64,000 nucleotides of DNA from Octopus sinensis (taxonomy: Eukaryota). Positions 2,735 to 34,619 of the stretch are shown here, piece by piece. The DNA lies in NCBI RefSeq assembly GCF_006345805.1, contig NC_042998.1, positions 187,426,001 through 187,490,000 on the forward strand. Reading direction: 5' to 3'. The notes beneath the pieces were generated by a model, which was given only the letters and a program-made list of their open reading frames with translations, was not told the origin of the DNA and ran no database searches. How positions within the stretch are numbered: the first letter of the stretch is position 1; each line of letters begins with the position of its first letter. Made by a program: the position numbers and the translations under genes.

Positions 2735-2902
2735 GCAGGAGTGGCTGTGTGGTAAGTAGCTTACCTACCAACCACATGGTTCTGGGTTCAGTCCCACTGC
2801 ATGGCATTTTGAGCAAGTGTCTTCTGCTATAGCCTCGGGCCGACCAATGCCTTGTGAGTGGATTTGGTAGACGGAAACTGAAAGAAGCCTGTCGTATATA
2901 TG

Positions 2903-2951
<49 letters not shown>

Positions 2952-3150
2952 TTGTGTGTCTGTGTTTGTCCCCCTAGCATTGCTTGACAACCGATGCTGG
3001 CGTGTTTACGTCCCCGTCACTTAGCGGTTCGGCAAAAAAGACCGATAGAATAAGTACTGGGCTTACAAAAATAAGTCCTGGGGTCAAGTTGCTCGATTAA
3101 AGGCGGTGCTCCAGCATGGCCACAGTCATATGACTGAAACAAGTAAAAGA
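2735..3150 (+). mobile_element. Octopus-type tRNA-derived SINE, family A (internal TA/TG microsatellite)
   Basis: A/B-box-like head tggctgtgtggtaag...ggttcagtccc, conserved core, gactgaaacaagtaaaaga tail. Further copies at about 14145-14570, 15078-15490, 31125-31500(-), 37611-37995, 38870-39272(-), 39970-40378(-), 43347-43730, 56317-56730(-), 57068-57475(-). Confidence 0.9.
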
Positions 3151-3179
3151 AAAGAAAGGAAGAATAAAGATCTACGTAC

Positions 3180-7552: not shown

Positions 7553-9597
7553 CATCATCATCATCATTTAACATTCGTTTTCCATGCTAGCATGGGTTGG
7601 ACAGTTCAACTGGGGTCTGGAAAGCCAGGAGACTGCACCAGGCTCCAGTCTGATCTGGTAGTGTTTCTACAGCTGGATGCCCTTTCTAATGCCAACCACT
7701 CCGTGTGTAGTGGGTGCTTTTTACGTGCCACCAGCACAGGGGCCAGGGGAGGCTGGCAACAGCCACAAACAATTGATGCTTTTTACGTGCCACCGGCATG
7801 GAGGCCAATCAAGGCAGCACTGGCATCGGCCATGTTCAGATGGTGCTTTTTATGTGCCACTGGCACAACTACAATTTCCATTTGATTTTCATTTTGATGT
7901 TGATGTTCTTGACTCAATAGGACTCCTCAAGCACAGCAGGTCACCCCATGATCCAAGGTACTTTTGAATGGGCTGGAGCTGGTTATGCAAAACTGGTGTA
8001 GGATACAGCCATGAACTCACATTATTTGTCGGGTCTTTGCAGCCACAGCATATCTCCAGAGGTCTCGGTCTTTCGTCATTGCCTCTGTGAGGCCCAACAT
8101 TTGAAGGTCATGCTTCACCACCTCATCCCATTTCTTCCTGGGTCCACCTCTACCCCAGATTCCTTAAACTGTTTGGGAGTGGCACTTCTTCACACATCTC
8201 TCCTCATCCATCCATAGTACACAACCATACCAGTGCAAACATCTCTCTTGCATGCCACATCCAATGCTTCTTATGTCCAACATTTCTCTCAGGGAGCTTA
8301 CACTCTGTCGTGTGTGCACACTGACATTACACATCCAGCAGATCATGCTAGCTTCATTTCTTTTGGGCCTATGCATTCCTCCACAGACACGGACCATATT
8401 TCACTGCTGTGAAGCATGGCAGTTCGCACACATGCATCATACAATCTACCTTTCACTCTGAGCGAGAGACCCTTTATCACCAGTAAGGGCAGAAGCTTTC
8501 TAAACTTTTCCCAGGCTATTCTTATTCTAGTGGTAACACTCTCAGAGCATCCACCCCCAACTACTAACTTGGTTACCTAGGTAGCGGAAGCTATCAACTA
8601 CTTTGAGTTTCTCCCCCTGGAGTGTGATGGAATCTGTTTTCTGAGCATCAGTGGTTCTATTGCCCCTGTGCATCTGCCGCACACGAAAGCTATCTTCCCG
8701 GTTAATCTTCCTTTGACGTTGCTGCACCTCTTATGTGTCCATAGCTTACACTGGGTACATTTTATGGAGTTTCTACTTACACCTTTTCTACAGATAGAGC
8801 AGGGCCACCTACCTGAGTGGGTGTGTGATGAGTTCGCCTTCCTACTTGCTAGAACTTTGGTCTTTTCTACATTAACTCTAAGGCCTTTTGATTCTAAACC
8901 TTGCTTCCACATCTGAAATTTATTCTCTAGTTCTAGTAGTGATTCTGCTATGAGGGCCAGGTCATCAGCATAGTGGAGCTCACAGGGGAAACCCATCTGG
9001 AATTCCTCTATAATTGCCTGGAGAACTATGATGAATAAAAAGGGACTGAGGGCTGATCCTTGGTGGACCCTACTTCTACCTGGAATACTTCACTATACTC
9101 ATTTCCAATCCTAACCTTACTAATGGCCTCTCTGCATAGGGCCTGTACAGCCCTTATTAGCCATTCGTCAATCCCCAGTTTCCGCATCGCCCACCAGATA
9201 AGGGATCGGGGGACCCTGTCAAAGGCTTTCTCCAAGTCCACAAAAGCTAAGTAGAGGGTTTTATCTTTAGCTAGGCATTTCTCCTGCAGTTGTCAAACCA
9301 GGAATATAGCATCAGTGGTGCTTCTACTTGGCACAAAACTGAACTGCATCACATCTAAGCAGACTCTTTCCCTAATGAGATGGGCTATAACCCTCTCTGT
9401 GATCTTCATTACCTTTTCCAGCAGTTTGATACTTCTGTAGTTATTTCTATCTAGAGTATCACCTTTACCCTTGTAGCAGTTGACTATGGTGCAGCTATGC
9501 CAATCATTGGGTACGACTCCATCATGAACTACCTGGTTTACAATGCGGGCGACTAGGCCATAGCCCACACCACCAAATATTTTAAGCATTCCTGATG
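7553..9597 (-). mobile_element. 5'-truncated RTE-clade LINE with repeat-containing 3' UTR and (CAT)n tail
   Basis: RT remnants DLEKAFDRVPR, LHYADDL, GLRVNVEKTK; C-terminal CxxC/CxxC and RLRWYGHV-like motifs. Confidence 0.92.
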
Positions 9598-10395: not shown

Positions 10396-11315
10396 CTGTA
10401 AATATAGAATAGAATCAATTTATGTAACATATCAGTAATAAAGGCTTATAGTATTTAGATATTTAGAATGTTGGTAATTTTTTTTCATTAGATACAAGGC
10501 CAAATTTTTTAGGACTGGATTACCTTGATATATTTATTCATCAATCTTGGAGGATAAGAAAGATGATAAGTTCAATCACTCTGAGATTTGGAGTCAGAAT
10601 CAAGAAGAGCAAAGTTAAATATGGCAATATATCAAGCGCTACACATTATTGTCTTGACCATCTCTATTGAGTTTACAAATCTAGAATACTATTATTTAAC
10701 TTGATCAGAAAAAAATATAATGGTGAGATTGAATACCATGTGAAATTCAGGTGATTTTGTTTTTCCACCTATATTTATGTCTAGTTTTCTTGATCTTGCT
10801 GCCATGGCTGGTGACTCTAATGGATATATTGGACAATGTGATGTTGGGTACTCCAATGAAGACAGAGAGTACGTTATGGAATACAGAATGAAAGATCAAG
10901 ACTCTTGGAGATTTGTGGCACAAGTGATCTAACCATTTTATAACACTAACATTAGAAAACACGTCAGCTACCTTGCATACCAATCACTTGGGCAAACATA
11001 CAAGCCCAATTCACTTTAGACTGACAAGAAAACAGAATAGACAGATGATTTGAATACTAATATACCAAAGTAGTCCCAGACGCAGAAGATAATTTGAAAA
11101 AGAGAGACATGAAACTGAAAGATATCTCAGCAATCTATGAGTTCAAAGAAGGAGGAACCAACCTATAACATAAAAGACAATTATGAGATAATTTGCTGGG
11201 AGCAACAAACATGATCTATGGAAGGTTCCAATCAAACAGAAGATGATATGATGGAAGTTGATCAAATGGAAGATGATCCATGTAATATCCTTCTTAAACA
11301 ATTATAATTCCTTAC

Positions 11316-12272
11316 GAGTAGTCGTAGTTATTAAAGGTGTTGTGATTGCATATTGAGTTGATGTTTCTTCAGATGTGTTCATTGATCGTGTTTGTGTGTC
11401 AAACTGTGTAACTGGTCGATGCTGTTACATAACACTTGGAATTCGCATCATCAGTTTGGAATCCCTATCTTGCTCAGAACATTGACCTCCTGGAATCTGT
11501 CCAGAGACGTGCAACCAAACGCATACCCTCCATCAGACACCTACCATATTCTGAGCGCCTTGTTTCCCTGGGCATGGATTCACTGAAGCTCCGGCGTCTG
11601 GCGACGGACTTGGTAAACACCCACAAGGTTATCAACCACCTCACCAACAACAACACTGAACACCTTTTTGATCTCCATGTGTCTAACACACGTGGACATG
11701 CCTACAAAGTCAGAAAACAACACAGCTCCCATGACTTTCGGAAACATTTTTTCACGCTCAGAGTTGCTGAAGCATGGAATAAACTGCCTGCGTCAGTTGT
11801 TGACTGCCATGACACTGCATCCTTTAAGGCCCTCATGCTTTCCGAAATCCGCCAAAACTACACCTGATTATATATACACTTTAGATGAGTTGTAGTGCAC
11901 CTGAGCACTGTACACAATGTTTATTATTATATATAAGAAGTGTCTTCTCCAGTTGTGTTAATTAACATTGTATTCCGAGATGCACTGAATGGAGTTGTTA
12001 GTTCAGAATCATTGAGTTTTGTTCCATTCTCAAGTGCGGCAAGTAATGCTGAAGCATAAGATACAGTTGATGATATTAAATTTCCTTGTGCATTAAATGG
12101 TTGCGCATTTGCAGGTATATCTGTTGCTCGTGATACTTCTGCTATATTCCTTTTTACCCTGATTTCCTTTATATCTGGCATTGCCTCTATTTGGCCTGCT
12201 TTTGAGTCTGTCATGAAATCATTGTTTTTACTAATGTGATGATTTGGTGGGAAAGGAAAAGATGCTGGCTGA
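11316..12272 (-). pseudogene. Disrupted duplicate of the stalk exon (pseudo-exon)
   Basis: Aligns to 37420-36960. Lacks the native acceptor (fused to intron sequence at 12272), carries an approximately 500-bp antisense LINE insertion (stop at 11929-11927) and a 14-bp frameshift deletion near 11412; donor gtaagg retained. Confidence 0.85.
11433..11936 (+). mobile_element. 5'-truncated CR1/L2-clade LINE 3' end inserted in the stalk pseudo-exon
   Basis: ORF 11436..11867 (LESVQRRATK, LRRL..DL, NTRGH, FFTLRV..AWNKLP); (tta)n tail; possible TSD acataa/atataa. Confidence 0.92.
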
Positions 12273-13030
12273 AACGTAAAGCTGATCTTGGGAATATTTC
12301 AATTCAGAACGTAAAGATATGCAACTAAATATCAAAGGCTGATGTGCTGCCACTCTACCAATGCACTACTATAATACAATAGTGTAGCTAGCGTGTCTGC
12401 CATCCGGGGTGGCCCTTCAGTCTGCCACACCTGGGCTGCCACAAAAAGTACATATTGCCTAAAGCAGACCCAAAAATGGCACCACACCCATAAAAGTACT
12501 GCACAGGGCAGACAACCCCTCTGTTCCCCTCTAGCTACACTAGTGCTCTAATAATAGTTAAAATTATGCTACACATACTGTAATGTATACTGAAACACTA
12601 TCATCTTTTTAATATACAGTATGATACACCATCTTAACCACCATCATCACCATTGTAGGTAGTGGCATCATAATTGTTGTTCTTTTCACAGCTTTGCAAG
12701 CAGTTTGATCAGTGGCATTCACTCACCTTCCTCCCACTCTTACCATCCTCCTACTCTCACATTTCTCCCACTCTCACCTTCCTCCCAACAAACATTAATG
12801 CACTTTCATCTTCCTAAGAGAACTTGAAGAATTAAATTTTTTGGTTAAAATATGAAAAACAACCTTCAGTCCTCAGTTATTCCAATCTAAACCCATTTTA
12901 TCATCTCCTTCACAAACACATTGAATGTATTACTCGACAAGTCAACAATACAGATTGATTAGCAAGAAATAGGAACCGAATTTCACACAAATTACCTCAT
13001 AGTCTCATAATGTGGTATATGTACATTATT
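12270..13030. repeat. Segmental duplicate of intron 26538-27298
   Basis: Collinear alignment; about 18 differences in the first 348 nt (hand count, about 95% identity). Confidence 0.93.
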
Positions 13031-13197
13031 CCTGAAAAGAAGGCAGGCTTGTCATGGTTAGAATACCATTGATCACTAGTTTGTTGAATCAGGGTTGGCC
13101 TCAAGTTAAACAACTATATTGCACTATATGGCTGTCCTTACAAAAGCATACTTGATGAACACATGGACATTGATTAAGAGCTCAACTTTTTACTTAC

Positions 13198-13326
13198 TTT
13201 TTACACAGATGTTTTCACTTTGCTTGTAATTGTCAGAGCAAGTACATCTCTTTGTTTCAGTGGAACAATAGGCATTACGAGCCTTACACTGATCCCCTTC
13301 TTCACATTTTTCACCAAATTTTTTCT
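13198..13326 (-). CDS. RPTP-like gene, six-Cys module 4 (KKFGEKCEEGDQCKARNAYCSTETKRCTCSDNYKQSENICVK)
   Basis: tatatttcag acceptor, gtaagt donor, 129 nt, phase 1-1, C-x5-C-x6-C-x6-C-x-C-x10-C. Confidence 0.88.
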
Positions 13327-13469
13327 CTGAAATATAGATTCTTTGGTTATTGGAATTCATGTTAAACTGATATAATAAACATTACAAAATAGGGTTATAC
13401 AGGTAAAATTCAAAGAAATTTCCATAATAATATTTCCTTATATACAGACTAAGTAACAGGATTGATCAT

Positions 13470-14130
13470 TAGATAATCATTAATTACATAGGGTGGGCAT
13501 AAGAGGTATCAAATGTGGTATGCAAAAGAGCCGACTGGTATGGTCATGTGGTGCATATGGATGAAGACAGCTGTGTAAAGAAGTGCTGATCTCTAACTGT
13601 GGAAGGAACTTGTGGTAAAGGTAGACCCAGAAAGACATGATACGAGATGGTGAAGCATGATCTTGAAACATTGGGCCTCTTGGAAGCAATGAGTAGTGAC
13701 CAAGATCTTTGGAAATATGCTGTGTATGAGGAAACACATCAAGCCAAGTGAAATCGTAGTTGTGGCCAATGCCAATCTCACATAACTAGCACCCATGCTG
13801 GTGGCACATAAAAAGCACCTGTCAGGTGTTGGGCCTCATGGAAGCAAAGACAAATGACCGAGGCCCTTGGCGATATGCTGTACTTGAGTAGAAGACCCAT
13901 CAAGCCAAGTCAAATCATAGTCATGGCAGATACTGGTGTTACGCACCTGACACACATGCTGGTGGCATGTAAAAGCACCCATTACACTCTCGGAGTGGCT
14001 GGTGTTTGGAAGGGCATCTAGCCATAGAAACCATGCCAAATCAGACTGGAATCTGGTGCAACTCCTCAGCTTTCCAGCTTTGGTCTAGCCATCCAACCCA
14101 TGCCAGCATGGACAATGGACGTTAAATGAT
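13470..14130 (+). mobile_element. RTE-clade LINE 3' end
   Basis: RLDWYGHVVHM-like segment, 3' UTR units, ggacgttaaatgatga tail. Confidence 0.8.
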
Positions 14131-14301
14131 GAAGATGTGCAGGTACAGCTGTATGGTTTAGAAGCTCTCTTTGTAACCACATAGTTTCAGGTTCAGCCCT
14201 ACTGTGCGGCATCTTGGGTTAGTGTTTATTACTATATCTCCAAGTTGACCAATACCTTGTGAGTGAATTTGGTAGATGGAAACTGTGTGGAAACCTGTTA
14301 C

Positions 14302-14347
<46 letters not shown>

Positions 14348-15652
14348 ATGTGTGTTGTTGTCTATATTTGCTTTTTCAACCACTGTTTGACAGCTGGTGT
14401 TGGTTTGTTTTCATCCATATAACTTAGCAATTTCGCAAAATTGACCAACAAAATAAGTACCAGATTTTTAAGAAAATAAATATTGGGGTCAATTTACTTG
14501 ACTAAAACTCTTCAAGACTGTACCCTAGCATGATTGCAGTTCAACAACTGAAGTAAGTGAAAAGATAAAAGATAGATAATAATTCTTGAAAAAAATATGG
14601 GATTTTATGTAGATCTATTAAGCAGATGGAAGTTATCTATAAACCTATCAAATTAGGTTAAGCCTAAAGACTGCAGTGGTATCTCTTGCAAACTGACTGA
14701 TAATCTGAAATGCAAGTGCACATCACAAATAAGCAGTGAAAACCTGACATAAAAACTCACAAATTTAGATCAACGTCAATATTCTCAGCATCACCTTCAA
14801 TATTTAAGACTGTTCAATGCTAACTTTAGAACAGATCAGCAAAACAACTTTATCTGTTTTGATTGTTATTTCATGTGAGGCTCAGCATTCTCATGGAAGG
14901 CCTAAAATCATTTCTAAACCCTTCCTAATTTGAAATAAAGGTAATTACAGGTGGTTCTGCTTGTTGATTTTACCTTGAACCATCTATCCATTACCTGTGG
15001 TTAGTAATGGGCAAAGAAATTTCAGGCAGTTCTGATTAGTATTATTTTTTAAATAACACTTTGGACATGCATATAAGTGCAGGTGTGGCTAAGTGGTAAG
15101 AAGCTTGCTTCCCATCCACATGGTTTCAGGTTCAGTCACACTGTGTGGCACCTTAGGCCAACCAAAGCCTTGTGAGTGGATTTAGTAGGCAGAAACTGAA
15201 AAGAAGCCTGTCATAGGTATGTGTGTGTGTGTGTGTCTGTGTGTGTGTGTGTGCGTGTGTGTGCATGTGTATTTATGTTGTCTTTATGTCTGTGTTTGCC
15301 CCTCACCCCCACCATTGCTTGACGGCCAGTATTGGTGTGTTTATGTCCCTGTAACTTAGCAGTTCAGCAAAAGAGACCATTAGAATAAGTACCAAGCTTA
15401 CAAAGAATAAATCCCGGGATTTATTTCTTTGACTAAAAGGCAGTACTCCAGCATGGTAGCAGTCAAATGACTGAAACAAGTTAATGAATAAAAGAATACA
15501 CGGAATATATCCTCAAGGTTTTCTATTTTTGAACTTAAATTAAAAGAGAGTTGACAAGAAGAAAATTTAATGTCCTCATATGGCAGTGCCCCAGCATGGC
15601 CACAGCTTGTGAGCTGAAACTAGAATCAATCAATCATAACAAGTTTACTTAC

Positions 15653-15775
15653 TGTCTACACATTTTCCGTGTTTCCAAAAATAGACCTCAAAACAATCAC
15701 ATCTGTGTTGCTCATTACAGTGGGCCCTTTTATCAAGACACTCTTCCACGGTACAGTTTTTACCATAGGCTAGCT
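15653..15775 (-). CDS. RPTP-like gene, six-Cys module 3 (LAYGKNCTVEECLDKRAHCNEQHRCDCFEVYFWKHGKCVD)
   Basis: ctcttcacag acceptor, gtaagt donor, 123 nt, phase 1-1, C-x4-C-x6-C-x5-C-x-C-x10-C. Confidence 0.88.
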
Positions 15776-15959
15776 CTGTGAAGAGTCAAAAGTTATTAGG
15801 ACAATCAAACTAGAGAAATTAAATTATTGTTATACTGATTTTTATACATTCAAATAAATGATAAATTGTCAGTTTGATGTTGAAGATTATGACACAACTG
15901 ATATATAGAAATGAAAAACATTATCACCATTATTGTTGCTTTCATCATCGCCATCGTTG

Positions 15960-16420
15960 TCACCGCCATCATCATCATCAAATCAAAATCAAAATCGAAA
16001 TCGATTAACATCAATGGAAATTGTAGCTGTGATACCAGTGCCGGTGGCACGTAAGAGAACCATCCGAACGAGGCCGTTGCCAGCGCTGCCCCGACTGGCC
16101 TCCGTGCCGGTGGCATGTAAAAATTACCATCCGATTGTGGCCGTTGTCAGCCTTGTCTGGCCCCTGTACCAGTGGCATGTAAAAAGCACCATCCGATCGT
16201 GGCCGTTTGCCAGCGTCGTCTGGCACCTGTGCAGGTGGCACGTAAAAAGCACCCACTACACTCACGGAGTGGTTGGCGTTAGGAAGGGCATCCAGCTGTA
16301 GAAACACTGCCAGATCAGACTGGGCCTAGCGCAGCCTTCTAGCTTCCCAGACCCCAGTTGAACCGTCCAACCCATGCTAGCATGGAAAACGGACGTTAAA
16401 CGATGATAATGATGATGATT
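15960..16420 (+). mobile_element. RTE 3' UTR tandem-unit array / derived SINE-like element
   Basis: About 6 units containing ggtggca(c/t)gtaaaaagcacc, then ccatgctagcatgg hairpin and (GAT)n tail. Related copies at 1962-2260, 9885-10140, 39320-39450, 54320-54630. Confidence 0.8.
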
Positions 16421-17055
16421 TAATATCTGTTTTCCATGCCGGCATGGGTTGGACAGCTTGACAGAAACTGGCAAGGCTAGGGGTCACACCCGGTTACATA
16501 GTCTGTTTTCACTTGATTTCTATGGCTAGATGCCCTTCCAAATGCCAACCATTCCACAGAGTGTACTAGGTGCTTTTTATGTGGTGCCATCACGGATGTG
16601 CTTTTTACATTGTACCAGCACCCACACCAATGCTCTTTACATGGCACCTTGGATTTAAGACTCAATTTTGTTGTGGTGGATGGTCTTCTTGAGTACAGCA
16701 ATGTGCCACATAGCTCAGTCCTCTGTCATCTCCTTTGTAGGGTTCAGCATTTTGAGATCAGCCTTCAATACTTCATTCTATGTCTTCCAGGGTCTCCCTC
16801 TTCCACAACTTTATTCCACTTTAAATGATTAGCACTTCTTTATGCAACTGTCCTTATTCATTCTCGTCACAGGATCAAATAAGTGTAGTCTCCTCTCTTG
16901 CACACTCAGTGGAGCATACCAACTTCATTCCTTTTCAGCTTTTGCATGCCCTCTGCATTCAGGGCCCATGTCTCACTATCATGCAGCATTGCAGTTCATA
17001 TACAAGCATCATACAATCTTCCCTTCAATCAGGAGGAAATTGTATTACACATGTA

Positions 17056-17087
<32 letters not shown>

Positions 17088-17089
<2 letters not shown>

Positions 17090-17684
17090 GCTTAATTAAA
17101 TTAAATTAAGTCAATCTACCATGGGTTACACTTCATCAGTAAAGAAACCGGGAGAGACAAATATACACGAGGCGTCTGTATCAATGCCTTCGGAATATCT
17201 GTCTTAAAATTTTCAAGACCATCGTATTCGCGCCAACTTATCAGCAGTAAATATAAACTGCCGATTCAATCTCAGAATTAGTCAGAAAATTATCAATTAA
17301 TCAATTTAGGGTAGCAAAAAAATTCAATACAAATTTTTCGCTACGAATGGCCTATTAAGGCCATTCCTAAATTGTTTAATTTTATATATTTAGTCTTTGA
17401 CTATTTTCTCTTTCCCACTAGACCGCTGGTAGCGATAAATTTCTATTGAATTTTTTGCTACCCTAAATTGATTAATTGATAATTTTCTGACTAATTCTGA
17501 GATTGAATCGGCAGTTTATATTTACTGCTGATAAGTTGGCGCGAATACGATGGTCTTGAAAATTTTAAGACAGATATTCCGAAGGCATTGATACAGAGGC
17601 CTCGTGTATATTTGTCTCTCCCGGTTTCTTTACTGATGAAGTGTAACCCATGGTAGATTGACTTAATTTAATTTAATTAAGCTA
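17088..17684. repeat. About 256-bp near-perfect inverted repeat with 84-bp spacer
   Basis: 17088-17344 is the reverse complement of 17429-17684 with only a few mismatches and one 1-nt indel. Confidence 0.95.
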
Positions 17685-18563
17685 GTTTACCATTAAAAAC
17701 ACCGAAACAATACATCGTATAAAGATGAATTAGGGTAAACGTTTTTAAATTTTCACCTAATTTCTGAATTACTACTTAGCGGTTTGAGTTATGGCTGCTC
17801 TTTCTAGTGGACGAATGGCCTATTAAGGCCATTCCTAAATTGTTTAATTTTATATATTTAGTCTTTGACTATTTTCTCTTTCCCACTAGACCACTGGTAG
17901 CGATAAATTTCTATTGAATTTTTTGCTACCCTAAATTGATTAATATATATATATATATATATGGTTAATCCAAACATGAACAAAGAGAAAACACAACAAC
18001 ACGAGGATGTGAAACAAGTATAGTATCATTGGAGGTTCAGAAAAGGAAAGAAAGAAGGAGGATTTAATGTTTCGAGCGGAGCTCTTCATCAGAAACATAG
18101 AAAAAGGAAAGGTCCAAAGAAGACAGAGAAAGAAAATCACCAATGATACACACGTGGTCACAAATATTTATGTGTATGTACGCCAGCCAAGATAAGTCAA
18201 TAATTGTCTAAAGTCGTAAGACGCTCCTGTCCTTTGTACTGTCCACCTTCGTGTTTTTTATTTTTATTTTTGTTTTATATATAATTTTGTTTCTTGTATT
18301 TACATTCGTGTGGCATCCTGTCTTTGTTCCGTATACGTTCGACCCTCTTTCCAAGAAATCCAATGCCTGTGGCTTGGATTTTTCTTGGGGCTGGCCAGAT
18401 CGGAGTGATATCGAGATTAAACAGCCGAAATCACTAAGATGATCCGGTTCCCGACTGAAGATTAGAGGCTTCGAGTGACCCGTCGGTTTTTTGTGTCGTC
18501 TCCTTGTGTGTTTTTGCGTTCTTGTCCCACTTTGTAATTTATATTTTATGTTAAATTCTATAC

Positions 18564-18598
<35 letters not shown>

Positions 18599-18601
<3 letters not shown>

Positions 18602-18825
18602 AAATATGCCGAAATATTGTCTATTAACCATATGAGTAAGTATCTCATTTATTTCTTTTGCCACATGTATCACTGACAAAGAGAGGGCTCTTAGTAGCTA
18701 ACTCTGAAATCGGTCCGAATGAAATTTTTTAGAAATTTCTGTCGACCTTTTTTCGAGTTGTGTGCGTATTGTGAAAAAATTATATGGTTAATGGACAATA
18801 TGTCCAATTTTTCGGCATATTTGGC
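18599..18825. mobile_element. MITE-like element
   Basis: Inverted ends gccaaatatgccgaa...atattgtc.attaaccatat. Confidence 0.6.
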
Positions 18826-19019
18826 ATTAGAATTTTTTCCTTTGCCCTCATTTATGAATTGTTTATAAATTTAACCGTTAATGGTATTTTTTAATATGTT
18901 GGCCATTGATAAAATTTTTTCGAGAAAATATTTTTTTTCGAAAAGAATTTTATCCTCACATTTGATATATATATATGTATATACATACACATAAATATTT
19001 CCAGAACACCTTACTGTCA

Positions 19020-19620
19020 GGGTCAATTGCTATGCACTGCTCTTTTTGCCACCTCCTTGAGATGGTTGGATGATTTATTGTGCTTTTTTCTATCTATATC
19101 TGATTTATGCAGTTTGTATTCCCATTCAGCATTGTGACATTCTTTCCTGACAAGTCTGACTGCTGCAGTCTCCCAATTTGCACTCTTTGGATGTTTTTTG
19201 TGCTTACATGGTACCAATGTCGCATATGCTGTCCATATTCAGGATGTTCTGAAGTATAGTGCTCACATCTCCAGAGTCGTAAAATTCTAGCCAGTTTGGG
19301 CATTGTAGCTTGGTGCAGTAAGAGTTCCAGACTGCTTTATTCCAATCAAAGTGAGCTGTTTGGAGATGGCTGTGGTTTTTGTTGCTACCCAAAAGGGACA
19401 GATTGGCAATGATCATAGCATGTTCAGAGTCACCTAAAGGTTCCTCAGTAGTAACACTAATAACCATTTCAGGAGTAGTGGCAAAGAGAAGATCCAAAGG
19501 CTTGTCACCTCTTGTTGGAGAGATGACTACTTGGAACCAGTTTGAGTCCAGCAGTAGCTCGAGGAAATCATTTGCACTTAGCGGCCAATGGAGGTTTCCC
19601 AATCAATCTCAGGGTGATTG
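19020..19620 (-). mobile_element. CR1/L2-type LINE AP-endonuclease fragment
   Basis: ORF 19204..19602 Q.V.SPTRG...LDL...PLGDSEH motif. Confidence 0.75.
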
Positions 19621-20318
19621 AAGTCATCTGCAATAAAAACATAAGAGATTGTTTACCTTGTGGCAGTTCTGAGGATATTACAAAGTTGTGTGTCCTGATG
19701 GTAATTTGTTGGGGTGGGTGCAGTAAACAACTCCAAGTAGAAGTGTTGACTTCTCATTCCAGTATGGATAACAAGCATTAAATTATGATGATGATGATGA
19801 TGCACAAGTGTTTCCATTTTGCTCACATATTAGTGTATTTTCCTCATAAGTTCTCTCTCTCTCTCTCTCTCTCTTTATACAGGTTTTTGTCCATCCTTTA
19901 CTTTTGAAGCATGAAGTAACATGATTTATTTATTATTTTGGCTGAATTCCAGCCTGGGCTGCAACAACAAAGTTTACCAGCCACATTTCTCAGTCCATCA
20001 TCACAGCCTCAAGGTCCTGGATACATTTCAGGCCAGTGTCTACAATCAAATTGTCGATGTGTGATGACGTTTTCCTTTTCTTGCTTCACCATGAAATTGG
20101 TTCTGCAAGACTAATTTGGATGCCTCCAGTTCATGGTGGTGTATGCAGTGACCAGATAGTCACAGTTGTCTTTGCCTGATCTTCTCTATAACATTCAGCA
20201 GATCCCCATAAAGGCATTCATTTGTCAATAACATATATTTTCAGTTTGGTTCATAAAGAAAAATACAAAAATGAAACACTGTAAAAAAACTTTAAAAAAA
20301 TAACGGATAAAAAATTAT

Positions 20319-20608
20319 CTATTGCATTTGATGGCATATAAGATGCATCTATTTTTTGAAAAACAATGTCTCAAAAAAGTTCCACTTGAGATTATGATGA
20401 TGTTTTTCGAATAACATTGTACAGTGGGTAAGTGTGAGAGGTCAGGACTGGCATGTTTTGAACATAAAACAAGGAGAATATTGTTGACAGGATATATCTG
20501 GTTGAAATGCTAAAGTGTTAATACACTAAAACTTTTTCCTGAATATGTGATGCTGAAATTGGGATGCATCTAATATGCCTGTGCATTTTTATGCCATCAA
20601 ATACAGTA
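20319..20608. mobile_element. MITE-like TIR element with nested piggyBac-MITE remnant
   Basis: About 27-bp imperfect inverted ends ta(t/c)tg(c/t)atttgatggcata. Confidence 0.6.
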
Positions 20609-20647
20609 CTTTCAATATATCTGTAACTTTTATCTATTTTTAAAAAA

Positions 20648-21690
20648 CTATTTCTAAGAGTAATTGTAGTCCTTTCTGTAGTTCAATGTCAATGTTCCGT
20701 TGTTTTTAACTTACTTTTTTCACACTTAGTTCCAAGACGAAAATATTTATCTTCACAGACACACTTTTGAGAGCTGCAAATGGCAAATTCATTTATGCAG
20801 GATGTATTTGTTTCACAATTCTCATTAAGTGCCAATTCTGCAATGAAACACATTAATTATAAAAATTAAACTGTGTACACCAACTTATAATAATTATTAT
20901 ATTAAAATTTATGGAACTCAACAACAGAAATAATGCATTTCTGAATTGTTAGATAATGCTATTAGATTTTCTCTTATGATAATATATTATTGTTATTATA
21001 TTTATTATTCATAATTTTAGGAAGATATCAAAAGATTTCTTTCTTTAAAAATGAATTAGGTACATTTTGGGAGAACATGCATCAAAGTTTCAAGTTTAAC
21101 AAGAATGTTTATGATCAAAATGTGTTGGAGGGTAACAAAACAAATTGAAAATATAAAGAAAAATTACACTGGAAAACACTCAAGAAAGTGTAACGGTTTG
21201 TTGTTAAGGTGTTGGTTGCCAGTATGCAAGATGGAAGAGAACAGTGATAGTGGTTGTAAAGAAATATTTATTTACCGTTACTTTAATATCTACCATACCA
21301 CAACAGGTAGGCTAGTGTAATAGTATAACACAGTTTGTAAAGCATGCAAGGTAAAAAGAGTTAATTTTGGCCTGTATATGAGTGTACACAAAGTAGTATA
21401 TATATAGAGATATGGTGATGTTGCAGAGAAAAGAAAGGGAGCTAATGAAAATGAGAGAGTGTGGATGAGACACTTTCTACATTGTTGTCACTCTCTGAAG
21501 TTATCTCAGTAGAGACAGTATTTTGTTTGAGCTGGTCAGCCGCCTCTCTGTCAGTCGCTCTCACTAACTGCTTTGGCTTACAGAGGGAGTTCTTGTTTTT
21601 CTAACTATCCAAAACCAGCCAGAAGGATAGACATATTGTTGAGAACAATAGATTTCGTTGGCGGTCTGTTATGTCTATTCTAGCTTTTGG
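20648..21690. repeat. Segmental duplicate of 28735-29780 including the Cys module exon
   Basis: Collinear near-identical alignment over about 1.05 kb; 5 differences in about 220 nt of intron next to the exon (hand count). Confidence 0.95.
20715..20837 (-). CDS. RPTP-like gene, six-Cys module 2, recent duplicate of module 1 (LALNENCETNTSCINEFAICSSQKCVCEDKYFRLGTKCEK)
   Basis: Same splice sites as module 1, 123 nt, phase 1-1, all six Cys kept; lies within the duplicated block 20648-21690. Confidence 0.88.
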
Positions 21691-24150: not shown

Positions 24151-24474
24151 GATCAGTCACACCCTTATTTTTCAAGATATTTGTTTCATTGGGAAATGAA
24201 GAAAAGACCTTTTGTTGGTATTTTCCTGTCAACCAGAAATGTCAGCTTGATATTTCCTGATCCCTCTATCCTCAACTCATTCTTCTAACCTCCTTTATTA
24301 AAATAGAGACTGAGAGATTATTCAACATAGGTTATTGGTATCCTATGGTTAAACATGTTCACCATCATCACTATGATATGTTGTTAGTCACAACTGCAGT
24401 AGCAGCAACAGGGATTAACTACCATAACCAGCCATGCTTTGTCGTACAAATCCATATACATACCTATTTCTTTA

Positions 24475-24695
24475 CTACCTACAAGGGGCTAAACACAGAA
24501 GAGACAAACAAGGACAGACAAACGGATTAAGTCGATCATATCGACCCCAGTGTGTAACTGGTACTTAATTAATCGACCCCGAAAGGATGAAAGGCAAAGT
24601 CGACCTCGGCGGAATTTGAACTCAGAACGTAACGGCAGACGAAATACTGCAAAGCATTTCGCCCGGCGTGCTACCATTTCTGCCAGCTCGCCGCC
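24475..24695 (-). mobile_element. tRNA-derived SINE, family B
   Basis: gcggcgagctggcagaa head, gagttcaaattccgccgaggtcgac B-box region. Copies at 540-755, 33535-33760, degenerate 26480-26620. Confidence 0.85.
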
Positions 24696-25005
24696 TATAC
24701 ATATACATACCTTTAACCCTGGTCAACATCACCAGAAGAGCACAGCTTGCCTGACACTAACATACACACACATCAACAAGCTTAAAAATTTACCCTGTTT
24801 AACTCTCTCCCTCTCTCACTCGCTCGCTCGATTGCTGAGACTGTTTTGTTGATTTTTTGTAGTTTAAAGTAAATAAATATTTTTATGTCGTAGAGAAGAT
24901 TCATCAATTATTCCTTTAATAAACACTTCATTCACCGCCCTTCTCTACAACATATCAATACCAATCATCTATACTGTAAAACAAACATATACACTGGTGA
25001 TTTAA

Positions 25006-25935: not shown

Positions 25936-27499
25936 AGCCCCTCTCAGACTAGTGAGATACATATGATATTCTTCTTGAACAATTTTAAGACAACAGCTAC
26001 AGAAGAAACATGAACAGGGACAGAATTCCTGAGTGCCAACGCTTCAGCAAGAAAGGAATTGGTAAAGTAATTAATATGAACCCTGTGGAGACATATTATG
26101 GGTAATGAGAGTGGAAGAGGTAAGTGAGGAAAGACTGAATGGAAGTAACACAAGATCTGTCGGTTCTGACAGCAGAGGTCATTGTAGCAGTGGTAGATAA
26201 TGCAGAGAGGAGACGGCATGTCAATGAGCCAGAGGTTGGAGTATTACGAGTGACTTCATACCAATCATTCAGGTTGTGTTTCTCTGGATGCAGCCTAGGA
26301 TGGCTGTAAGTTTAGCACCAGGATCACGTTGAGACACAGAGAATACCTAGGTTTGCTACATATGTATGTGTAGAGGTGAGCAGTTAAACTAAAGTATAAA
26401 TCACATCTCATTAGCTGATAATTTAAATTATCATTCATAATGGAAACACAAGGACCACATATTTATGAGGAAAAGGGACTGTTGCTTATACTAGGTTCAG
26501 CAGAATACTGGAACTTATTTTATTGACTCTAGAAAAATGAAACGTAAAGCTGATCTTGGGAAGATTTTAATTCAGAATGTAAAGATATGCAACTAAATAT
26601 CAAAGGCTGATGTACTGCCACTCTACCAATGCACCACTCTAATACAATAGTGTAGCTAGCGTGTCTGCCATCCAGGGTGGCCCTTCAGTCTGCCATACCT
26701 GGGCTGTCACAAAAAGTACATATTGCCTACAGCAGACCCAAAAGTGGCACCACACCCATAAAAGTGCTGTACAGGGAAGACAAACCCTCTGTTCCCCTCT
26801 AGCTACACTAGTGCTCTAATAATAGTTAAAATTATGCTACACATACTGTACTGTATACTGAAACACCACCATCTTTTTAATATACAGTATGATACACCAT
26901 CTTAACCACCATCATCACCATTGTAGGTAGTGGCATCATAATTGTTGTTCTTTTCACAGCTTTGCAAGCAGTTTGATCAGTGGCATTCACTCACCTTCCT
27001 CCCACTCTTACCATCCTCCTACTCTCACATTTCTCCCACTCTCACCTTCCTCCCAACAAACATTAATGCACTTTCATCTTCCTAAGAGAACTTGAAGAAT
27101 TAAATTTTATGGTTAATATATGAAAAACAACCTTCAGTCTTCAGTTATTCCAATCTAAACTCATTTTATTGTCTCTTTCACAAACACTTTGAATGTATTA
27201 CTCGACAAGTCAACAATACAGATTGATTAGCAAGAAATAGGAACTTAATTTCACATAAATTACCTCATAGTCTCATAATGTGGTATATGTACATTATACC
27301 TATGTAGCAAGTCATAAAAGGTGGCAATATTACATAATGTTCGTTTGCCCGAACAAGCACAATTGTTGGTATCCCAATGGTTAAAATTACTGCCCATATA
27401 TGAATTCTAAACTTTCGTAAAAGAAATCTTTCACGAAATACAGTTCTTAGAATTCGGATATGAGTAGTTATAAAAACCCTGATTTTTGGGAAATTACTC

Positions 27500-28710
27500 A
27501 AATGGCTGCACCAGGCCCCAATCTTGATCTGGAAGAGTTTCTACAGCTGGATGCCCTTCCTAATGCCAACCACTCTGAGATTGTAAGTGGGTGCTTTTTA
27601 CGTGCCACCAGCACGGGACCCAGTCAGGTGGTACTGGCAACGACCTCGCTCAAATCTTTTTACACATGCCACCAGCACAGGTGCCAGTAAGGCGATGCTG
27701 GTAACGATCACACTCAAATGGTGCCCTTTTATGTGCCACTGGTACGGAAGCCGGTTAGCCGCTCTGTCAACGATCACCCTTATATGGTGCTCTTTGCACC
27801 TCGCTAGCACGGATGCCAGTCATCGAATTTGATTTTGATTTTGATTTCGATTTCACTTGCCTCAACAGGTCTTCGCAAGCAGAGTTTAGTGACCAAAGAA
27901 GGAAAAGGTATGCATAAGCGGGCTGGTGACGCTCCTGGCATAAGCCACAGATTATGGTCTCATTTGGCTTGCCGCGTCTTCTCAAGCACAGCATATTTCC
28001 AAAAGTCTCAGTCGCTAGTCATTTCCTTGGTGAGGCCTAAAGTTCGAAGGTCGTACTTCACCACTTCATCCCAGGTCTACTGCTTCCACAGGTTCCCTCA
28101 ACAGCTAGGGTGTGGCACTTTTTCACACAGCTATCCTCATCCATTCTCACCACGTGACCATACCAGCGCAGTCGTCTCTCTTGCACATCACATCTAATGC
28201 TTCTTAGGTCCAACTTTTCTCTCGAGGTACTTACACTCTGTCTAGTATGCACACTGACATTACACATCCATCAGATCATACTGGCTTCATTCCTTGCGAG
28301 CTTACACATGACCTCAGCAGTCACAGCCCATGTTTCACTGCCATGTAGCATGGCTGTTCATACACAAGTGTCATACAGTCTACCTTTTACTCTGAGTGAG
28401 AGGCCCTTTGTCACCAGCAGAGGTAAGAGCTCTCTGAACTTTGCCCAAGATATTCTTATTCTAGCAGTTACACTTTCAGTGCACCCGCCTCCGCTACTGA
28501 CTTGGTCCCTAAGTAACGGAAGCTATCAACTACTTCTAGTTTTTCTCCCTGGAATGTGGCAGAAGTTCGTCTCTGCACATTTTCAGTGTTTATCGCTCCC
28601 GAGCATCTGCCACATACAAAAACTATCTTCTCAATTAGCCTTCCCTTGATATTACTGCACCTCTTATGTGTCCATAGCTTACACTGGGTACATCTTATAG
28701 AGTTTCTACC
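27500..28710 (-). mobile_element. RTE-clade LINE 3' portion
   Basis: ORF 28058..28267 ERRLRWYGHVVRM plus 3' UTR repeat units. Confidence 0.88.
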
Positions 28711-28799
28711 TACACCTCTATTTTTTTTTTTATTATTTCTAAGAGTAATTGTAATCCTTTTTATAGTTCAATGTCAAAGTTCTGTTGTTTTTAACTTAC

Positions 28800-28922
28800 T
28801 TTTTTTACACTTAGATTCATCTTCAAAATAATCATCTTGACAGACACACTTTTGATTTCTGCAAATGGCAAATTCATTTATGCAGGATGTATCTCTTTCA
28901 CAATTCTCATTAAGTGCCGATT
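28800..28922 (-). CDS. RPTP-like gene, six-Cys EB/EGF-like module 1 (SALNENCERDTSCINEFAICRNQKCVCQDDYFEDESKCKK)
   Basis: gtgtttcattgcag acceptor, gtaagt donor, 123 nt, phase 1-1, spacing C-x5-C-x6-C-x4-C-x-C-x10-C. Confidence 0.88.
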
Positions 28923-29789
28923 CTGCAATGAAACACATTAATTATAAAAATTAAACTGTGTACACCAACTTATAATAATTATTATATTCAAATTTATGGA
29001 ACTCAACAACAGAAATAATGCATTTCTGAATTGTTAGATAATGCTATTAGATTTTCTCTTATGATGATATATTATTGTTATTATATTTATTATTCATTAT
29101 TTTAGGAAGATATCAAGAGATTTTTTTCTTTAAAAATGAATTAGGTACATTTTGGAGAACATGCATCAAAGTTTCAAGTTTAACAAGAATGTTCATGATC
29201 AAAATGTGTTGGTGGTTAACAAAACAAACTGAAAACACAAAGAAAAATTACACTGGAAAACACTCAAGAAAGTGTAACGGTTTGTTGTTAAGGTGTTGGT
29301 TGCCAGTATGCAAGATGGAAGAGAACAGTGATAGTGGTTGTAAAGAAATATTTATTTACCGTTACTTTAATATATACCATACCACAACAGGTAGGCTAGT
29401 GTAATAGTATAACACAGTTTGTAAAGCATGCAAGGTAAAAAGAGTTAATTTTGGCCTGTATATGAGTGTACACAAAGTAGTATATATATAGAGATATGGT
29501 GATGTTGCAGAGAAAAGAAAGGGAGCTAATGAAAATGAGAGAGTGTCGGATGAGACAGCTTCTACATTGGTAAACTCCATTGTTGTCACTCTCTGAAGTT
29601 ATCTCAGTAGAGACAGTATTTTGTTTGAGCTGGTCAGCCGCCTCTCTGTCAGTCGCTCTCACTAACTGCTTTGGCTTACGGAGTTCTTGTTTTTATAACT
29701 ATCCAAAACTAGCCAGAAGGATAGAGATATTGTTGAGAACAATAGATTCCGCTGGCGGTCTGTTATCTCTATTCTAGCCTTTTGATCCC

Positions 29790-30410
29790 AGACCTTGTTC
29801 CACACCTGTAATTTCTTCCCTAGTTCTGGTCATCATTCAGCTATAAGAATAAGGTCATCGGTGTAGAAGAGGTCCTGTGGGCAGCCAGTTTTAAATCCCT
29901 CTGTTATGGCCTAGAGAACTATGATAAACAAGAAGGGTCTGTGAGCCAATCCTTGGTGAACTCCTAACTATACACTAAATTCCAAGCTAATATCATTGCC
30001 GACTTTCACCTCAGACTCCATCCTGTACATGGCCTGTACAGCTCTCACCAACCACTCATCTATTCCTGGCTTCAGCATTGCCCACCAGATAAGAGAGTCA
30101 GTGTCCCCATCCAAGGATTTCTCCATGTTGACAAGAACCAAGTACAGAGGTTTATTTTTGGCTAAATACTTCCCCTGCAGTTGCTAGTCCAAAAGATAGC
30201 ATCAGTAGTGTTCCTTCCAGGTACAAACACAAACTGCATCTCATCTAGACTAACCCTCTTCCTAATTAGTTGAGCTATGATCCTTTCTGTAACTTTCATC
30301 ACTTGGTCCAGCGATCTGATACCTCTGTAATTATTTCTGTCTAAAGCATCATCTTTACCTTTGTAACAGTTGACTATAATGTTGCTACACCAGTTGTTGG
30401 GTATGACTTA
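29790..30410 (-). mobile_element. RTE-clade LINE RT fragment bounding the duplicated block
   Basis: Homologous to the RT region at 9000-9560. Confidence 0.8.
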
Positions 30411-33400
30411 CAAGGGGACAATCTGATTAACTATACTGGTGACTAGGCCATATCCTACTCTACAAGTTTACTAAGTTTATTTACTCTGTCAGTATGAATC
30501 TTAAAACTCTGCAAAATCTTATACTTCTTACTTACTAGCACTTGACTAGGTTCACATTTGTACCACTTATCAGTATGGTCATTTTCTAGCTTTCTACATA
30601 ACTTCCAATGGATTATTCTCCCTAAGTTGTCATACTTTTTTGTATTCCTTTTGTGCTAGCATACTACATTCATTAACTATATAAGTTACACTTTCGTCCT
30701 TTAATTTATGTAACCTACATAGAGAATTTACCTGATTTTTATCTATCTTAGCTTTTATTCAGTTATTCCTCTATGCCTGATCTTATGTTCCAATTAACAA
30801 ACTTTCTGTCTCTCTTTTTAGCTTTCCTTTCTACCACCACAACCATGTTTCACTATTATTATTTTCTGCAACTATTTTTAGAAATCTACCATGCAAAGCT
30901 TTCTCTTATCAGTCAGATAATCTTGCTTCTTTTTTATGGCTTTTACTGACATTTGGTTTTTTGGTTTCCTTATCTCCTACTGTTACACTAAAATTTTGTC
31001 ACTATTACCTACATAGGAAGCTATATCCACTCTAGCTAACTCCACACAGTCTTCTACTGATATTAAACCTCTACCACCTTTCTTTCTAGGTAAATAGAAT
31101 CTTGCTACTCCTCTCTTTTACTCTTTTACTTGTTTCAGTCATTTGACTGCGGCCATACTGGAGCACCGCCTTTAGTCGAGCAAATCGACCCCAGAACTTA
31201 TTCTTTGTAAGCCCAGTACTTATTCTATCGGTCTATTTTGCCGAACCGATAAGTGACGGGGACGTAAACACACCAGTATCGGTTGTCAAGCAATGCTAGG
31301 GGGACAAACACAAACACACACACACATATATACATATATATGACAGGCTTCTTTCAGTTTCCGTCTACCAAATCCACTCACAAGGCATTGGTTGGCCCAA
31401 GGCTCTAGCAGAAGACACTTGCCCAAGATGCCACGCAGTGGCATGAACTCGGAACCATGTGGCTGGTTAGCAAGCTACTTACCACACAGCCACTCCTGCG
31501 CCTCCATTCATATTGAATTCATTCTTCTGTCTAGATTTGCTAATTCAGATCTTGTCCAATCTACAAAAGCTGCTGAATATCTAAGTAAGGATGCTGAACC
31601 AAATATTTACAGCCTTCACCAGATTCGGACCATTTAGCTTTGACTTCATTAACTTCCTCACCCAACTTTCTCTTTCATTTCTATAGTTAGTATTCTGTCA
31701 GATTCTAATACTCCTTGATGCTTATAACTTACCCCTTTCAATGATTTTAATCTCTGGCCATCTAGTTTTTGAATGCTTTCACTACTGACTACCTTTACTT
31801 TTTTTATGACTAATATTGCACACTTATCTATGCCAAATTCCATGCTTATATCTTTGCTAAAGAGTCTTACAGTTTTTATTAAAGAATCTGTCTCCTTTTT
31901 ATTCTTACTAAAAAGCTTCAAATACTCCTTGTAGAGCAAATTGTTAATGTTTCCTTTACTATCTCTGAACTGATACCCAGCCTTTGCCTTTCTTAATACT
32001 AAATTGAGGGGTGGTTAAAGGTAACATAAATATCAAAGGAGACAATGAGTCTCCTTGGAAGATTACCTCTCTTGATATTAACTTTCCCTAAGGTTGTATT
32101 ACCTAAGTAAAGGTCTACTTTCCATTTTTTTTTTGTGTTATAGCTAACTAAATCTTTTATGTTATCTGTAATATTGAATATACTCAAACATTTGCTTATC
32201 CATGAACATGAAATCATGTCATAGGTGTTCTTATAATCTATCCATAATAAAATTTTTCTTTCTTGATTTCACTTCTTTTAGAACTGCTTTGTCTATGTAT
32301 AATAGATCATGCACTCCTCTAGCCTTCTTCCTGCAATCTTTCTGTTTTTTCTGGAAGTAAATTCTGTCTGTCAAGATGTTCAGAAATGCTTCATGAGAGC
32401 ATTCCTGTTAACACTTTGCTCACTAATGGTAAGCAAATTATTGGTCTATAATTACTAGCTATATTTCCCTTACTTTTGTCTTTTATAAGGAGTACTCTCT
32501 CCCTCCAGTCATCCAGATAGGTATGACTCCTCCATTCAAACAATCCTGAAGCTGTTCTCTCATTCTACCATATAAGTTTCTAAATATCTTTAACCAATAT
32601 CCTTGAACTAAATCTGGTCCAGTGCTCTTCCTTCCAATTCAGCATTCTTCCTAACATGTTATTCATTAAAGCACTAGTTAGTTTTAGATCTGTCCACTTC
32701 TCGCTAACCATTTCTTCCCTCACTTTCTTTAACCATGTTGCATCCTCATTATGATCAACTGGTTTATCTCAAATATCACTCCAGAACTTTCTAGTTTCTT
32801 CTACATTAGGTTCCTCATCCTCAGTAGTTTCTTCTACACTATTTACTTGGCAATAAAATTTCCTCTGGTTTGTCTCTAACAATCTATTCTGTTGATACTG
32901 ATCTATTCTTTTCTGATATCTGGAAAGCTTACTAGATACTGCTATGATACATTGTTTCAACTCTTCCACGACTATCCTAAACCCTTTCTCTTTAACTAAG
33001 TATGTTTTCTTAAGAGAAGATTTAAATCTTGTATTTCCCACCTTGTCCTGTTCCTAGGCTTCTATTCTACTCAGATCTTGGCTTAAAATATTCACTTTAT
33101 TTTGTAATTTCCTTGTCTGCACCTGCTCCTTCCTATTCTTTCCTCGTGGAATACCTAGTCTTCTAGTAACTACCACACCTGCTGCATAGCTCAATAAGTT
33201 AGAGTCATCTATATCTATAGTATCTACTTTCATAATAATATCAAGTAACTTCCTTTTATTAACACCTTTTAATTCTAGTAATCTTTTGCTTTCTTCTCAT
33301 TACTTCTTTCAACTCACCTAAAATCTTTAGTCACCGGAGTCAGTTTTCCCTTCCTGATTGGTAGGACTATTATTTTTTCTTGTAGGCTCTTCCTTGACTT

Positions 33401-33535: not shown

Positions 33536-34619
33536 GCAGAAGCGTTAGCGCGCCGGGCGAAATGCTTTGCGGTACTTCGTCTGCCGTTACGTTGTGAGTT
33601 CAAATTCCATCGAGGTCGACTTTGCCTTTCATCCTTTCGGGGTCGATAAATTAAGTACCAGTTACGCACTGGGGTCGATGTAATCGACATAATACCTATG
33701 TCTGTCCTTGTTTGTCCCCTCTATGTTTAGCCCCTTGTGGGTAATAAAGAAATAGGTATTAGCCTGGTCCATTGGTCATACCTTTCTTTAAAAAAGGTGC
33801 TAACATATACTTCCTGTAACCTTTTACTTTGGGTTCACTTTCCATGTAGCACTACATCACTACCCTGTGACCTTCACTTGTCCATTTCCGCTTCGTTATT
33901 CTGTTAATTACTGATGCTGTCTTAGAATAACAACTGATGTTAGCCTGCATCCATACTAAACAACTGCCAAGCAAAAGGCCTTCCCTTAAAGGTTCAGCCT
34001 CATTTATATTGTTATCACTAGAGTTTCTGTGTAAATTCAGGTGTCTCATAAACTGAGGTAAGGTAATGCATGTGTGTGTTTTTATCATGACAGCATCACC
34101 ATGCACCTGATGAGGTTTTTCCTCATTCTTGGTAAATTTCATCTTAGTTTAGGTTATGCTGTCGGATTAACTATATATATTGCATGGCTCAGTGGTAAGA
34201 GTGTTGGGCTCACAACCATAAGGTAGTGAGTTTGATTCCTGGACTAGGCTGTGTTGTGTTCTTGAGCAAGACACCTTATTTCAGTGGAATGAAAATCCTG
34301 AGTTATTCGTAGTTTGTGAATTTTTAATAAAAATGTGAAAGTGGTTTATCAATTCAAAAATCGATATCCACAAAATAATCATACTTTCTGATTTTTTAAT
34401 GCTAAAAACCTTCCTGACGACTCTCTTTGTAATCTCGAAAAATGTCGTAACCATTAGTCCAGCTGTCTGGCCAGGAAGAGGGAACAAAGAGACAGACAGA
34501 AAGACAGATGGACATACCACCCATTGTAGTAAGATAGCAAATCTGCCCATCTATGATGGGAAATAAAGGGATAGTATCGCAAATCTAAACCCACTAAGTT
34601 CATGAACTATATGGGGGAA

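Follow-up and report, generated by a model that had tools for sequence, protein, structure and literature searches.

Exon-bearing segments duplicated in rotated order within an octopus EB-module gene: microhomology-mediated template switching as a probable explanation in place of one circle

The stretch analyzed here (the window) comprises 64,000 nucleotides of the Octopus sinensis genome (RefSeq assembly GCF_006345805.1, contig NC_042998.1, positions 187,426,001 to 187,490,000 of the forward strand), and all coordinates below are those of the window. Its minus strand carries a predicted gene for a secreted protein, consisting of a predicted signal peptide, a stalk or pro-region exon and a series of EB modules, and three segments of this gene are present twice, in an order that is rotated between the two sets. 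The duplications are best explained, with fair probability, by microhomology-mediated template switching, and not by the excision and reinsertion of one circle.

The candidate first coding exon lies 3.7 kb upstream of the stalk exon, with which its phase is compatible, and the stalk exon specifies an RVKR dibasic site and, after it, a stretch rich in Ser, Thr and Asn. All four EB-module exons (in segments A and A', and the third and fourth module exons, m3 and m4) are 123-129 nt long, possess good AG and GTAAGT splice sites in phase 1-1, and align in a six-cysteine pattern. The concatenated modules match the EB module of Pfam (PF01683) with 45.7 bits, above the curated threshold of 24.3 (E = 6.7e-12), and the older modules share 33-41 % of their amino acids. 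The stalk exon C and the exons in A, A', m3 and m4 splice to one open frame. A search of a large protein collection with the stalk and modules as query gave no related protein at E ≤ 0.01, exact look-ups of the stalk open reading frame (ORF), two ORFs that span joints and one ORF of a long interspersed nuclear element (LINE) found nothing on record, and a literature search for an octopus EB module was likewise empty. The coordinates of the gene, the duplicated segments and the elements around them are collected in Table 1.

Table 1. Exons, duplicated segments and transposable elements discussed in the text; source and copy are assigned as argued below.
Feature	Position	Strand	Remarks
Candidate first coding exon	41128-41181	-	Predicted signal peptide MKTFPVYTILWVVSFLVK; GTAAGT donor; phase 0; heuristic scan, prediction only
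A24 run	37428-37451		On the gene strand, T24 polypyrimidine tract and AG acceptor of the stalk exon
Stalk exon	36960-37425	-	466 nt; phase 0 to 1; T24-AG acceptor, GTAAGG donor
Segment C	36940-37420	-	Probable source of C'; stalk exon minus first 5 nt, plus ~20 nt of downstream intron
LINE copy 2, 5' half	29783-30466	-	Reverse-transcriptase part; 69-72 % identity to LINE at 8883-9568 and 51936-52628
Segment A	28717/28734-29782 (feature bounds 28720-29782)	-	Probable derived copy of A', in LINE copy 2
EB-module exon in A	28800-28922	-	123 nt; phase 1-1; acceptor and donor intact
LINE copy 2, 3' half	27506-28719	-	Continuous in LINE coordinates with 5' half except for ~100 bases
Segment B	26538-27301	-	Intronic; probable source of B'; low-coordinate end inside an old SINE copy (~26400-26640)
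Segment A'	20633/20649-21688	-	Probable source of A
EB-module exon in A'	20715-20837	-	123 nt; phase 1-1
EB-module exon m3	15653-15775	-	Phase 1-1; single copy
EB-module exon m4	13198-13326	-	Phase 1-1; single copy
Segment B'	12270-13033	-	Probable derived copy of B; starts mid-SINE
B'/C' joint	12270-12272		TGA (TCA on the gene strand) common to both sources
Segment C'	11296-12272	-	Probable derived stalk-exon copy without the T24-AG acceptor and first 5 nt
LINE fragment in C'	11433-11929	+	5'-truncated, 497 bp; splits C'; 143-amino-acid C-terminal ORF
LINE copy 1	7633-9589	-	Uninterrupted reference copy
LINE copy 3	51923-53474	+	Second uninterrupted reference copy

A self-BLAST of the whole window returned exactly three same-strand, collinear duplicate pairs, with E-values that are effectively 0 and no further copies of A, B or C. 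Segments A and A' (~1.05 kb) are 95.9 % identical over aligned bases, and B and B' align without gaps over 764 bp at 96.1 % identity. The C pair aligns in two parts, 37084-37420 with 11930-12272 (91.4 % identity) and 36940-37090 with 11296-11432 (93.9 %). Between these parts C' holds the LINE fragment, which has a short target duplication of ATAA type at its ends and entered C' after the duplication; in addition, C' has lost 14 bp, with a shift of frame, and gained 6 bp in frame. An origin of the pairs as copies of a mobile element is not supported in the window, as each segment has only two copies in 64 kb and B continues as a short interspersed nuclear element (SINE) past the start of B'.

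Read on the gene strand, the order is C...A...B upstream and A'...B'C' downstream, which is a cyclic permutation, and the two spans are similar overall (10.9 and 10.4 kb). The homologous patches total ~2.3 kb of ~10.4 kb, or ~22 % of either 10-kb span. The gap between A and B is 1.4 kb and that between A' and B' is 7.6 kb, and only matches of transposon families are common to both gaps. The original prediction had described a native block of three segments and a rotated copy of it. The three segments and their permuted order were recovered by self-BLAST to within a few bases of the positions it gave, but the continuous blocks dissolved into three separate patches.

The junction of B' and C' is exact. 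In the copy it reads ...GCTGGC-TGA-AACGTAAAG...; the match to C ends at 37420, where the source goes on CCATGCT-A24, and the match to B starts at 26538, where the source is preceded by ...TCTAGAAAAA. Position 26538 is joined to 37420 in the copy, an end-to-start join with 3 bp of microhomology, and on this point the sequence bears out the original prediction, including the position of the B side in mid-SINE. On the C side the break falls shortly beyond the T24-AG acceptor, 5 nt into the stalk exon. Its distance from the A24 run is 7 nt, and this run is the sole homopolymer of at least 20 nt in the window; 0.85 % of the window is within 10 nt of any homopolymer run of at least 10 nt. On the B side the SINE runs in register across 26538 with ~70 % identity to its family on both sides, and other copies of the family lie at 483-756, 24460-24696 and 33536-33759. 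At B the SINE is intact, at B' it is truncated, and the 25 bases next to the joint are identical in the two. An Rfam search and a tRNA scan gave no identification of this SINE, and a literature search with its core sequence found nothing.

The joint recreates a possible splice acceptor (CGTTTCAG/CCAGC, 12268-12300, minus strand). A splice-mediated origin of the joint itself, by back-splicing or through a lariat, was rejected, as the B side is without GT and the nearest AG is 1-4 nt downstream of the joint. Also rejected was the insertion of B' as a transposon into a longer copy of C. The candidate 17-nt target duplication is matched at ~70 % only (anchored test p = 0.027), and homology to sequence upstream of C, sought past B', scored 16 against 14.2 ± 2.2 for shuffled sequences, which is to say that there is none.

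The direction of copying can be read from the surrounding elements, and older transposon continuity across breakpoints may in general serve to orient each piece of a rearrangement without an outgroup. LINE copy 2 lies on both sides of segment A, in two halves that have the same orientation and share 69-78 % identity with the two uninterrupted copies, in both of which the halves are contiguous; the sister copies have Pfam matches to RVT_1. At the site of A the LINE has lost ~100 bp (31 codons) between its reverse-transcriptase and PHD-like parts, and the homology of A with A' stops no more than a few bases from either edge of the LINE. Since a LINE cannot insert around a segment, and since this LINE, which shares ~70 % identity with its relatives, predates by far a duplication of 3 % divergence, A is probably derived and A' its source. 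The upstream segment would have been pasted into LINE copy 2, so that what had been taken for the native block would itself hold a derived piece. From A towards B the 3' half of the LINE is unbroken and fills the interval, which means that m3 and m4 never lay there.

Two further observations concern this insertion. In the LINE family a PHD/C1-like zinc finger directly follows the reverse-transcriptase domain (8598-8996, minus strand), and it was the linker between them that the insertion of A removed. A Helitron-like capture of A was considered and set aside; a CTAG end and a small hairpin were seen, but the 5' end and the 100-bp loss of target do not fit.

Segments B' and C' appear to derive from B and C, that is, in the direction opposite to that from A' to A. 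For B the direction follows from the SINE, which is truncated in B'. For C it follows from the splice acceptor that C retains and from its phase (0 to 1), which suits the phase 1-1 modules; C' fits neither. C' is out of frame after m4 and, if it were spliced there, would contribute 12 residues before a stop codon. At the first start-type codon of the listed ORF, C' has ATG and C has GTG.

Raw identities over aligned bases differ among the pairs (96.1 % for B, 95.9 % for A and 91-94 % for C), and the excess difference is confined to the exons. At sites expected to be neutral the divergence is homogeneous, with 26 differences in 888 non-coding positions of A (2.9 %), 30 in 764 of B (3.9 %) and ~3 in 129 synonymous sites of the exons (2.3 %; chi-square p = 0.43). 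The three patches are equally old within error, which is the result that a test proposed in the original prediction had looked for. Different ages of the segments were rejected on the same data, the gap in raw identity being entirely non-synonymous exon change.

Non-synonymous sites differ at 49 of 453 positions (10.8 %; p = 1.7e-9 against neutral sites). Exons diverge by 8-14 %, as against 2-4 % for introns and synonymous sites together and 2.5-3.9 % for introns alone. The ratio of non-synonymous (dN) to synonymous (dS) divergence is ~7 for the module exon (28800-28922 against 20715-20837; dN 0.149, dS 0.020) and ~4.3 for the stalk exon (36960-37420 against 11311-12272; dN 0.105, dS 0.025), values that multi-nucleotide events may inflate, because some of the changes are runs of 3-5 adjacent mismatches. 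The changes cluster at 28815-28824, 28856-28858 and 37243-37295, and they are concentrated just after the RVKR site and between cysteines. With the protein product of the duplicated exons changing several times faster than the introns, the gene is a candidate for diversifying selection.

These features point, with somewhat better than even probability, to microhomology-mediated template switching, either of the type known as fork stalling and template switching (FoSTeS) or break-induced replication mediated by microhomology (MMBIR) or as synthesis during break repair. The gene would have undergone a kilobase-scale copy-and-paste at the DNA level, in two patches. For the first, a 1.06-kb piece with the first EB-module exon (A') would have been copied ~8 kb upstream into a break in the old intronic LINE, replacing ~100 bp of it and producing A. 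For the second, synthesis would have copied 764 bp of intron (B), jumped back 10.9 kb to the stalk exon at the TCA microhomology, copied 481 bp there (C), and been sealed into the intron after m4, giving B'C'. The apparent permutation of the segments is likely to be a by-product of where these two patches landed, and a duplication in rotated order can in this way mimic the footprint of a circular intermediate. We infer that the copying was of a replicative or repair nature. Equal ages are compatible both with one event of five switches and with two events close in time.

Several features of the breakpoints agree with template switching. Microhomology is present at the 5' joint of the LINE with A (CAAAAG(G)C, 6-7 nt), at the 3' joint of A with the LINE (TAGA) and at the B'/C' joint (TCA). 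The insertion of A entailed a loss of ~100 bp from the acceptor and no target-site duplication, and introns were retained. Two nearby templates in cis (27301-26538 for B' and 37420-36940 for C') were joined in non-reference order at one site, 165 bp downstream of the m4 donor. Templates lie 7-25 kb away in cis, those of B'C' being 14-25 kb from the insertion site, and the sources of all copied pieces are retained. Microhomology, templated pieces in non-reference order and small acceptor losses are described for replicative insertions (PMC5120786), and templated insertions have been linked to MMBIR (PMC8421209).

There are also points that weigh against template switching. Unless both patches belong to a single complex event, it is a coincidence that one gene underwent two independent events alike in age, size and type. 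By a rough estimate, chance alone would give the cyclic order in perhaps 1 of 10 placements. Three joints can be read on both sides, and the outer joints of B'C' (13033/13034 and 11295/11296) need the pre-insertion sequence. The TAGA at the 3' joint of A has an alternative reading as an A11 tail or filler. Finally, the polarity of all segments is read from transposon continuity and exon logic only.

A broader proposal is that the fast-evolving EB-module gene diversifies by repeated short-range, microhomology-mediated copy-and-paste, in which entire exons, splice sites included, are placed in its own introns and even in resident transposons, under strong diversifying selection on the new and old copies, and that the three patches record one multi-switch replicative event. 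This is a speculative extension that we would not expect to hold in full. If it were true, the locus would display non-tandem exon shuffling at nucleotide resolution in a cephalopod-like genome. Already on the main reading, a whole phase 1-1 exon was gained by non-tandem, microhomology-mediated insertion into an intronic LINE. None of the mechanisms involved is new in kind, and the most interesting by-products are that an in-frame module exon was gained in a non-tandem way and that the duplicated exons diverge fast at the protein level.

The alternative that survives best retains a closed intermediate for B'C' alone. A circle or a transient tandem duplication of 37420-26538 would have formed at the TGA, and only a 1.25-kb fragment across the closure of B and C would have been captured after m4, with A arising separately. 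The B'/C' joint is exactly the closure joint of such a circle or tandem repeat, and breaks are known to capture fragments of extrachromosomal DNA (for example, PMC11372161). The scheme is nonetheless unlikely. Of the 10.9 kb, 9.6 kb must have been lost either ahead of capture or following it, three joints and trimming are called for where a simple template switch needs three joints, and no feature of the sequence demands a circle. By sequence features alone, capture of such a fragment and template switching are inseparable.

For segment A, an origin by reverse transcription can be proposed, in which the LINE machinery copied an unspliced, prematurely polyadenylated pre-mRNA to give an A-tailed insert, 5'-truncated in the intron and accompanied by a target deletion. 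On the gene strand A ends ...AGAAATA-ATAAAAAAAAAAA-TAGAGG(LINE), where the source reads GTTTTTTAAAAA, and its 5' joint has 6-7 nt of microhomology; L1-type insertions are known to show microhomology at the 5' joint and, on occasion, deletion of target sequence. However, the source has AAAAATAGA at the same offset, and the run is explained equally well by homology and a T6-to-A6 change. As a poly(A) tail, the A11 run that ends A on its 3' side is ambiguous. Introns are kept on both sides of the exon, a deletion of ~100 bp stands in place of a target-site duplication, the LINE copies of the window end in TA or TTA repeats and not in poly(A), and B'C' is without any tail. A retrocopy is for these reasons decidedly doubtful.

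Tandem exon duplication is the commonest route of exon duplication, and EB modules are a repeated exon family at this locus. The patches might accordingly be the remains of older units of module(s), intron and stalk, reshaped by large deletions and homogenized by gene conversion. In such an array the end-to-start joint should separate the copies and the SINE end should be intact on the downstream side, and the opposite is seen: the joint is 14 kb downstream of B, and the intact SINE flank follows the upstream B and not the downstream copy. Schemes of simple tandem duplication, which predict a head-to-tail joint between the copies and an intact distal flank after the second copy, were rejected on the same grounds. 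For both homology ends to fall at the TGA, an array must further have been truncated twice, independently, at one and the same base; gene conversion depends on flanking homology, and this is absent in the LINE and in the flanks of A'; and no decayed relics of the stalk or of B were found elsewhere in the window. We consider an array of this kind very unlikely.

The single circle of the original prediction fares worse still. It held that a 10.9-kb circle, closed at TGA, arose from 37420-26538 by excision or copying and was reopened between the stalk and module 1, and reinserted downstream, with m3 and m4 later deleted from the upstream copy. Much of the pattern is what such a circle would leave: the cyclic order of C-A-B and A'-B'-C', the joining of two source ends inside the derivative, microhomology or short indels only (3-7 nt) at the joints, the equal neutral age of the three segments and the similarity of the overall spans. 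In these respects the locus resembles circle-derived duplications (PMC7450558). A circle opened at a single point, however, requires the outer ends of the copy to be adjacent in the source (PMC7450558), and here they are 7.2 kb apart (29782 and 36940), or 9.6 kb for B'C' alone (27301 and 36940). Two continuous parallel lines of identity are replaced by the three patches with their unequal gaps. Nor does the material trace to a single ancestral locus, as the LINE bracketing would make A the derived member upstream while B' and C' are derived downstream, and the unbroken 3' half of the LINE between A and B leaves no room for deleted modules. One excised and reinserted circle is accordingly not supported, the later deletion of m3 and m4 falls with it, and we hold the model highly improbable. 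A mis-join or a collapsed or expanded haplotype is scarcely credible, as the copies differ by 3-12 % and have private events (the LINE insertion, the 14-bp and 6-bp indels and the four intronic indels), the joints share 3-7 nt only, which is too short to mislead an assembler, and the window is without N.

The window contains other repeats and features. A SINE-like family of ~400 bp has at least 8 copies of 80-92 % identity (2735-3161, 31112-31503, 37584-38002, 38858-39278, 39966-40390, 43334-43743, 56317-56725 and 57068-57472) and older copies at 14137-14572 and 15077-15495; it gave no Rfam match, and no tRNA-like head was detected. Tandem repetition is seen at 56259-57808 (period ~750 bp, 94 % identity, composed of a SINE copy and a TA/CA-rich microsatellite block), at 59977-60821 (three copies of a 278-bp unit, 95-97 % identity) and at 58984-59399 (162-bp period, carrying an open frame at 59009-59407 on the minus strand). 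A tRNA-Gln (TTG) at 45039-45109 (minus strand), a single ARAGORN call, lies next to an ORF at 45613-46119 that we take to be Helitron-helicase-like and that has no Pfam match. The interval 62400-63900 is GC-rich (47 %) with long overlapping ORFs on both strands, and resembles a retroelement remnant, again with no Pfam match.

Among known systems, the locus is closest to FoSTeS/MMBIR insertions, with which it shares joint microhomology of 3-7 nt, a small acceptor loss, the lack of a target-site duplication, nearby cis templates in non-reference order (B then C) and a breakpoint beside a long homopolymer. Most known cases are alleles from human disease or cancer, and their size is often much greater, whereas the patches described here are kilobase-sized, occur in a reference assembly within one gene and each carry a whole exon, and their replicative origin is inferred. 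Circle-mediated, circularly permuted duplication reportedly underlies colour-sidedness at KIT in cattle (attributed to Durkin et al., 2012). Human segmental duplications also include circle-mediated permuted duplications (PMC7450558). With these the locus has in common source-interval ends joined inside the derivative, microhomology at the joint and an overall cyclic order. It differs from them in that the outer ends are non-adjacent in the source, the homology is in three short patches, one of which runs the opposite way (source downstream, copy upstream), and the patches are ~1 kb in size, compared with 22 kb to 3.9 Mb for circle-mediated duplications.

The outcome for the gene resembles the shuffling of phase 1-1 exons for cysteine-rich modules such as EB (PF01683), in that a symmetric exon was duplicated with its splice sites and in frame. 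Unlike in tandem exon duplication, the new EB exon is placed ~8 kb upstream, inside a LINE of the preceding intron. The excess of exon over intron and synonymous divergence, with changes after a dibasic site and between cysteines, is also a likeness to families of secreted toxin or immune type. In such families, among them the conotoxins and snake venom PLA2, exons evolve faster than introns; here, unlike there, a single paralogous pair represents each exon, and one of the two stalk copies is now a pseudo-exon.

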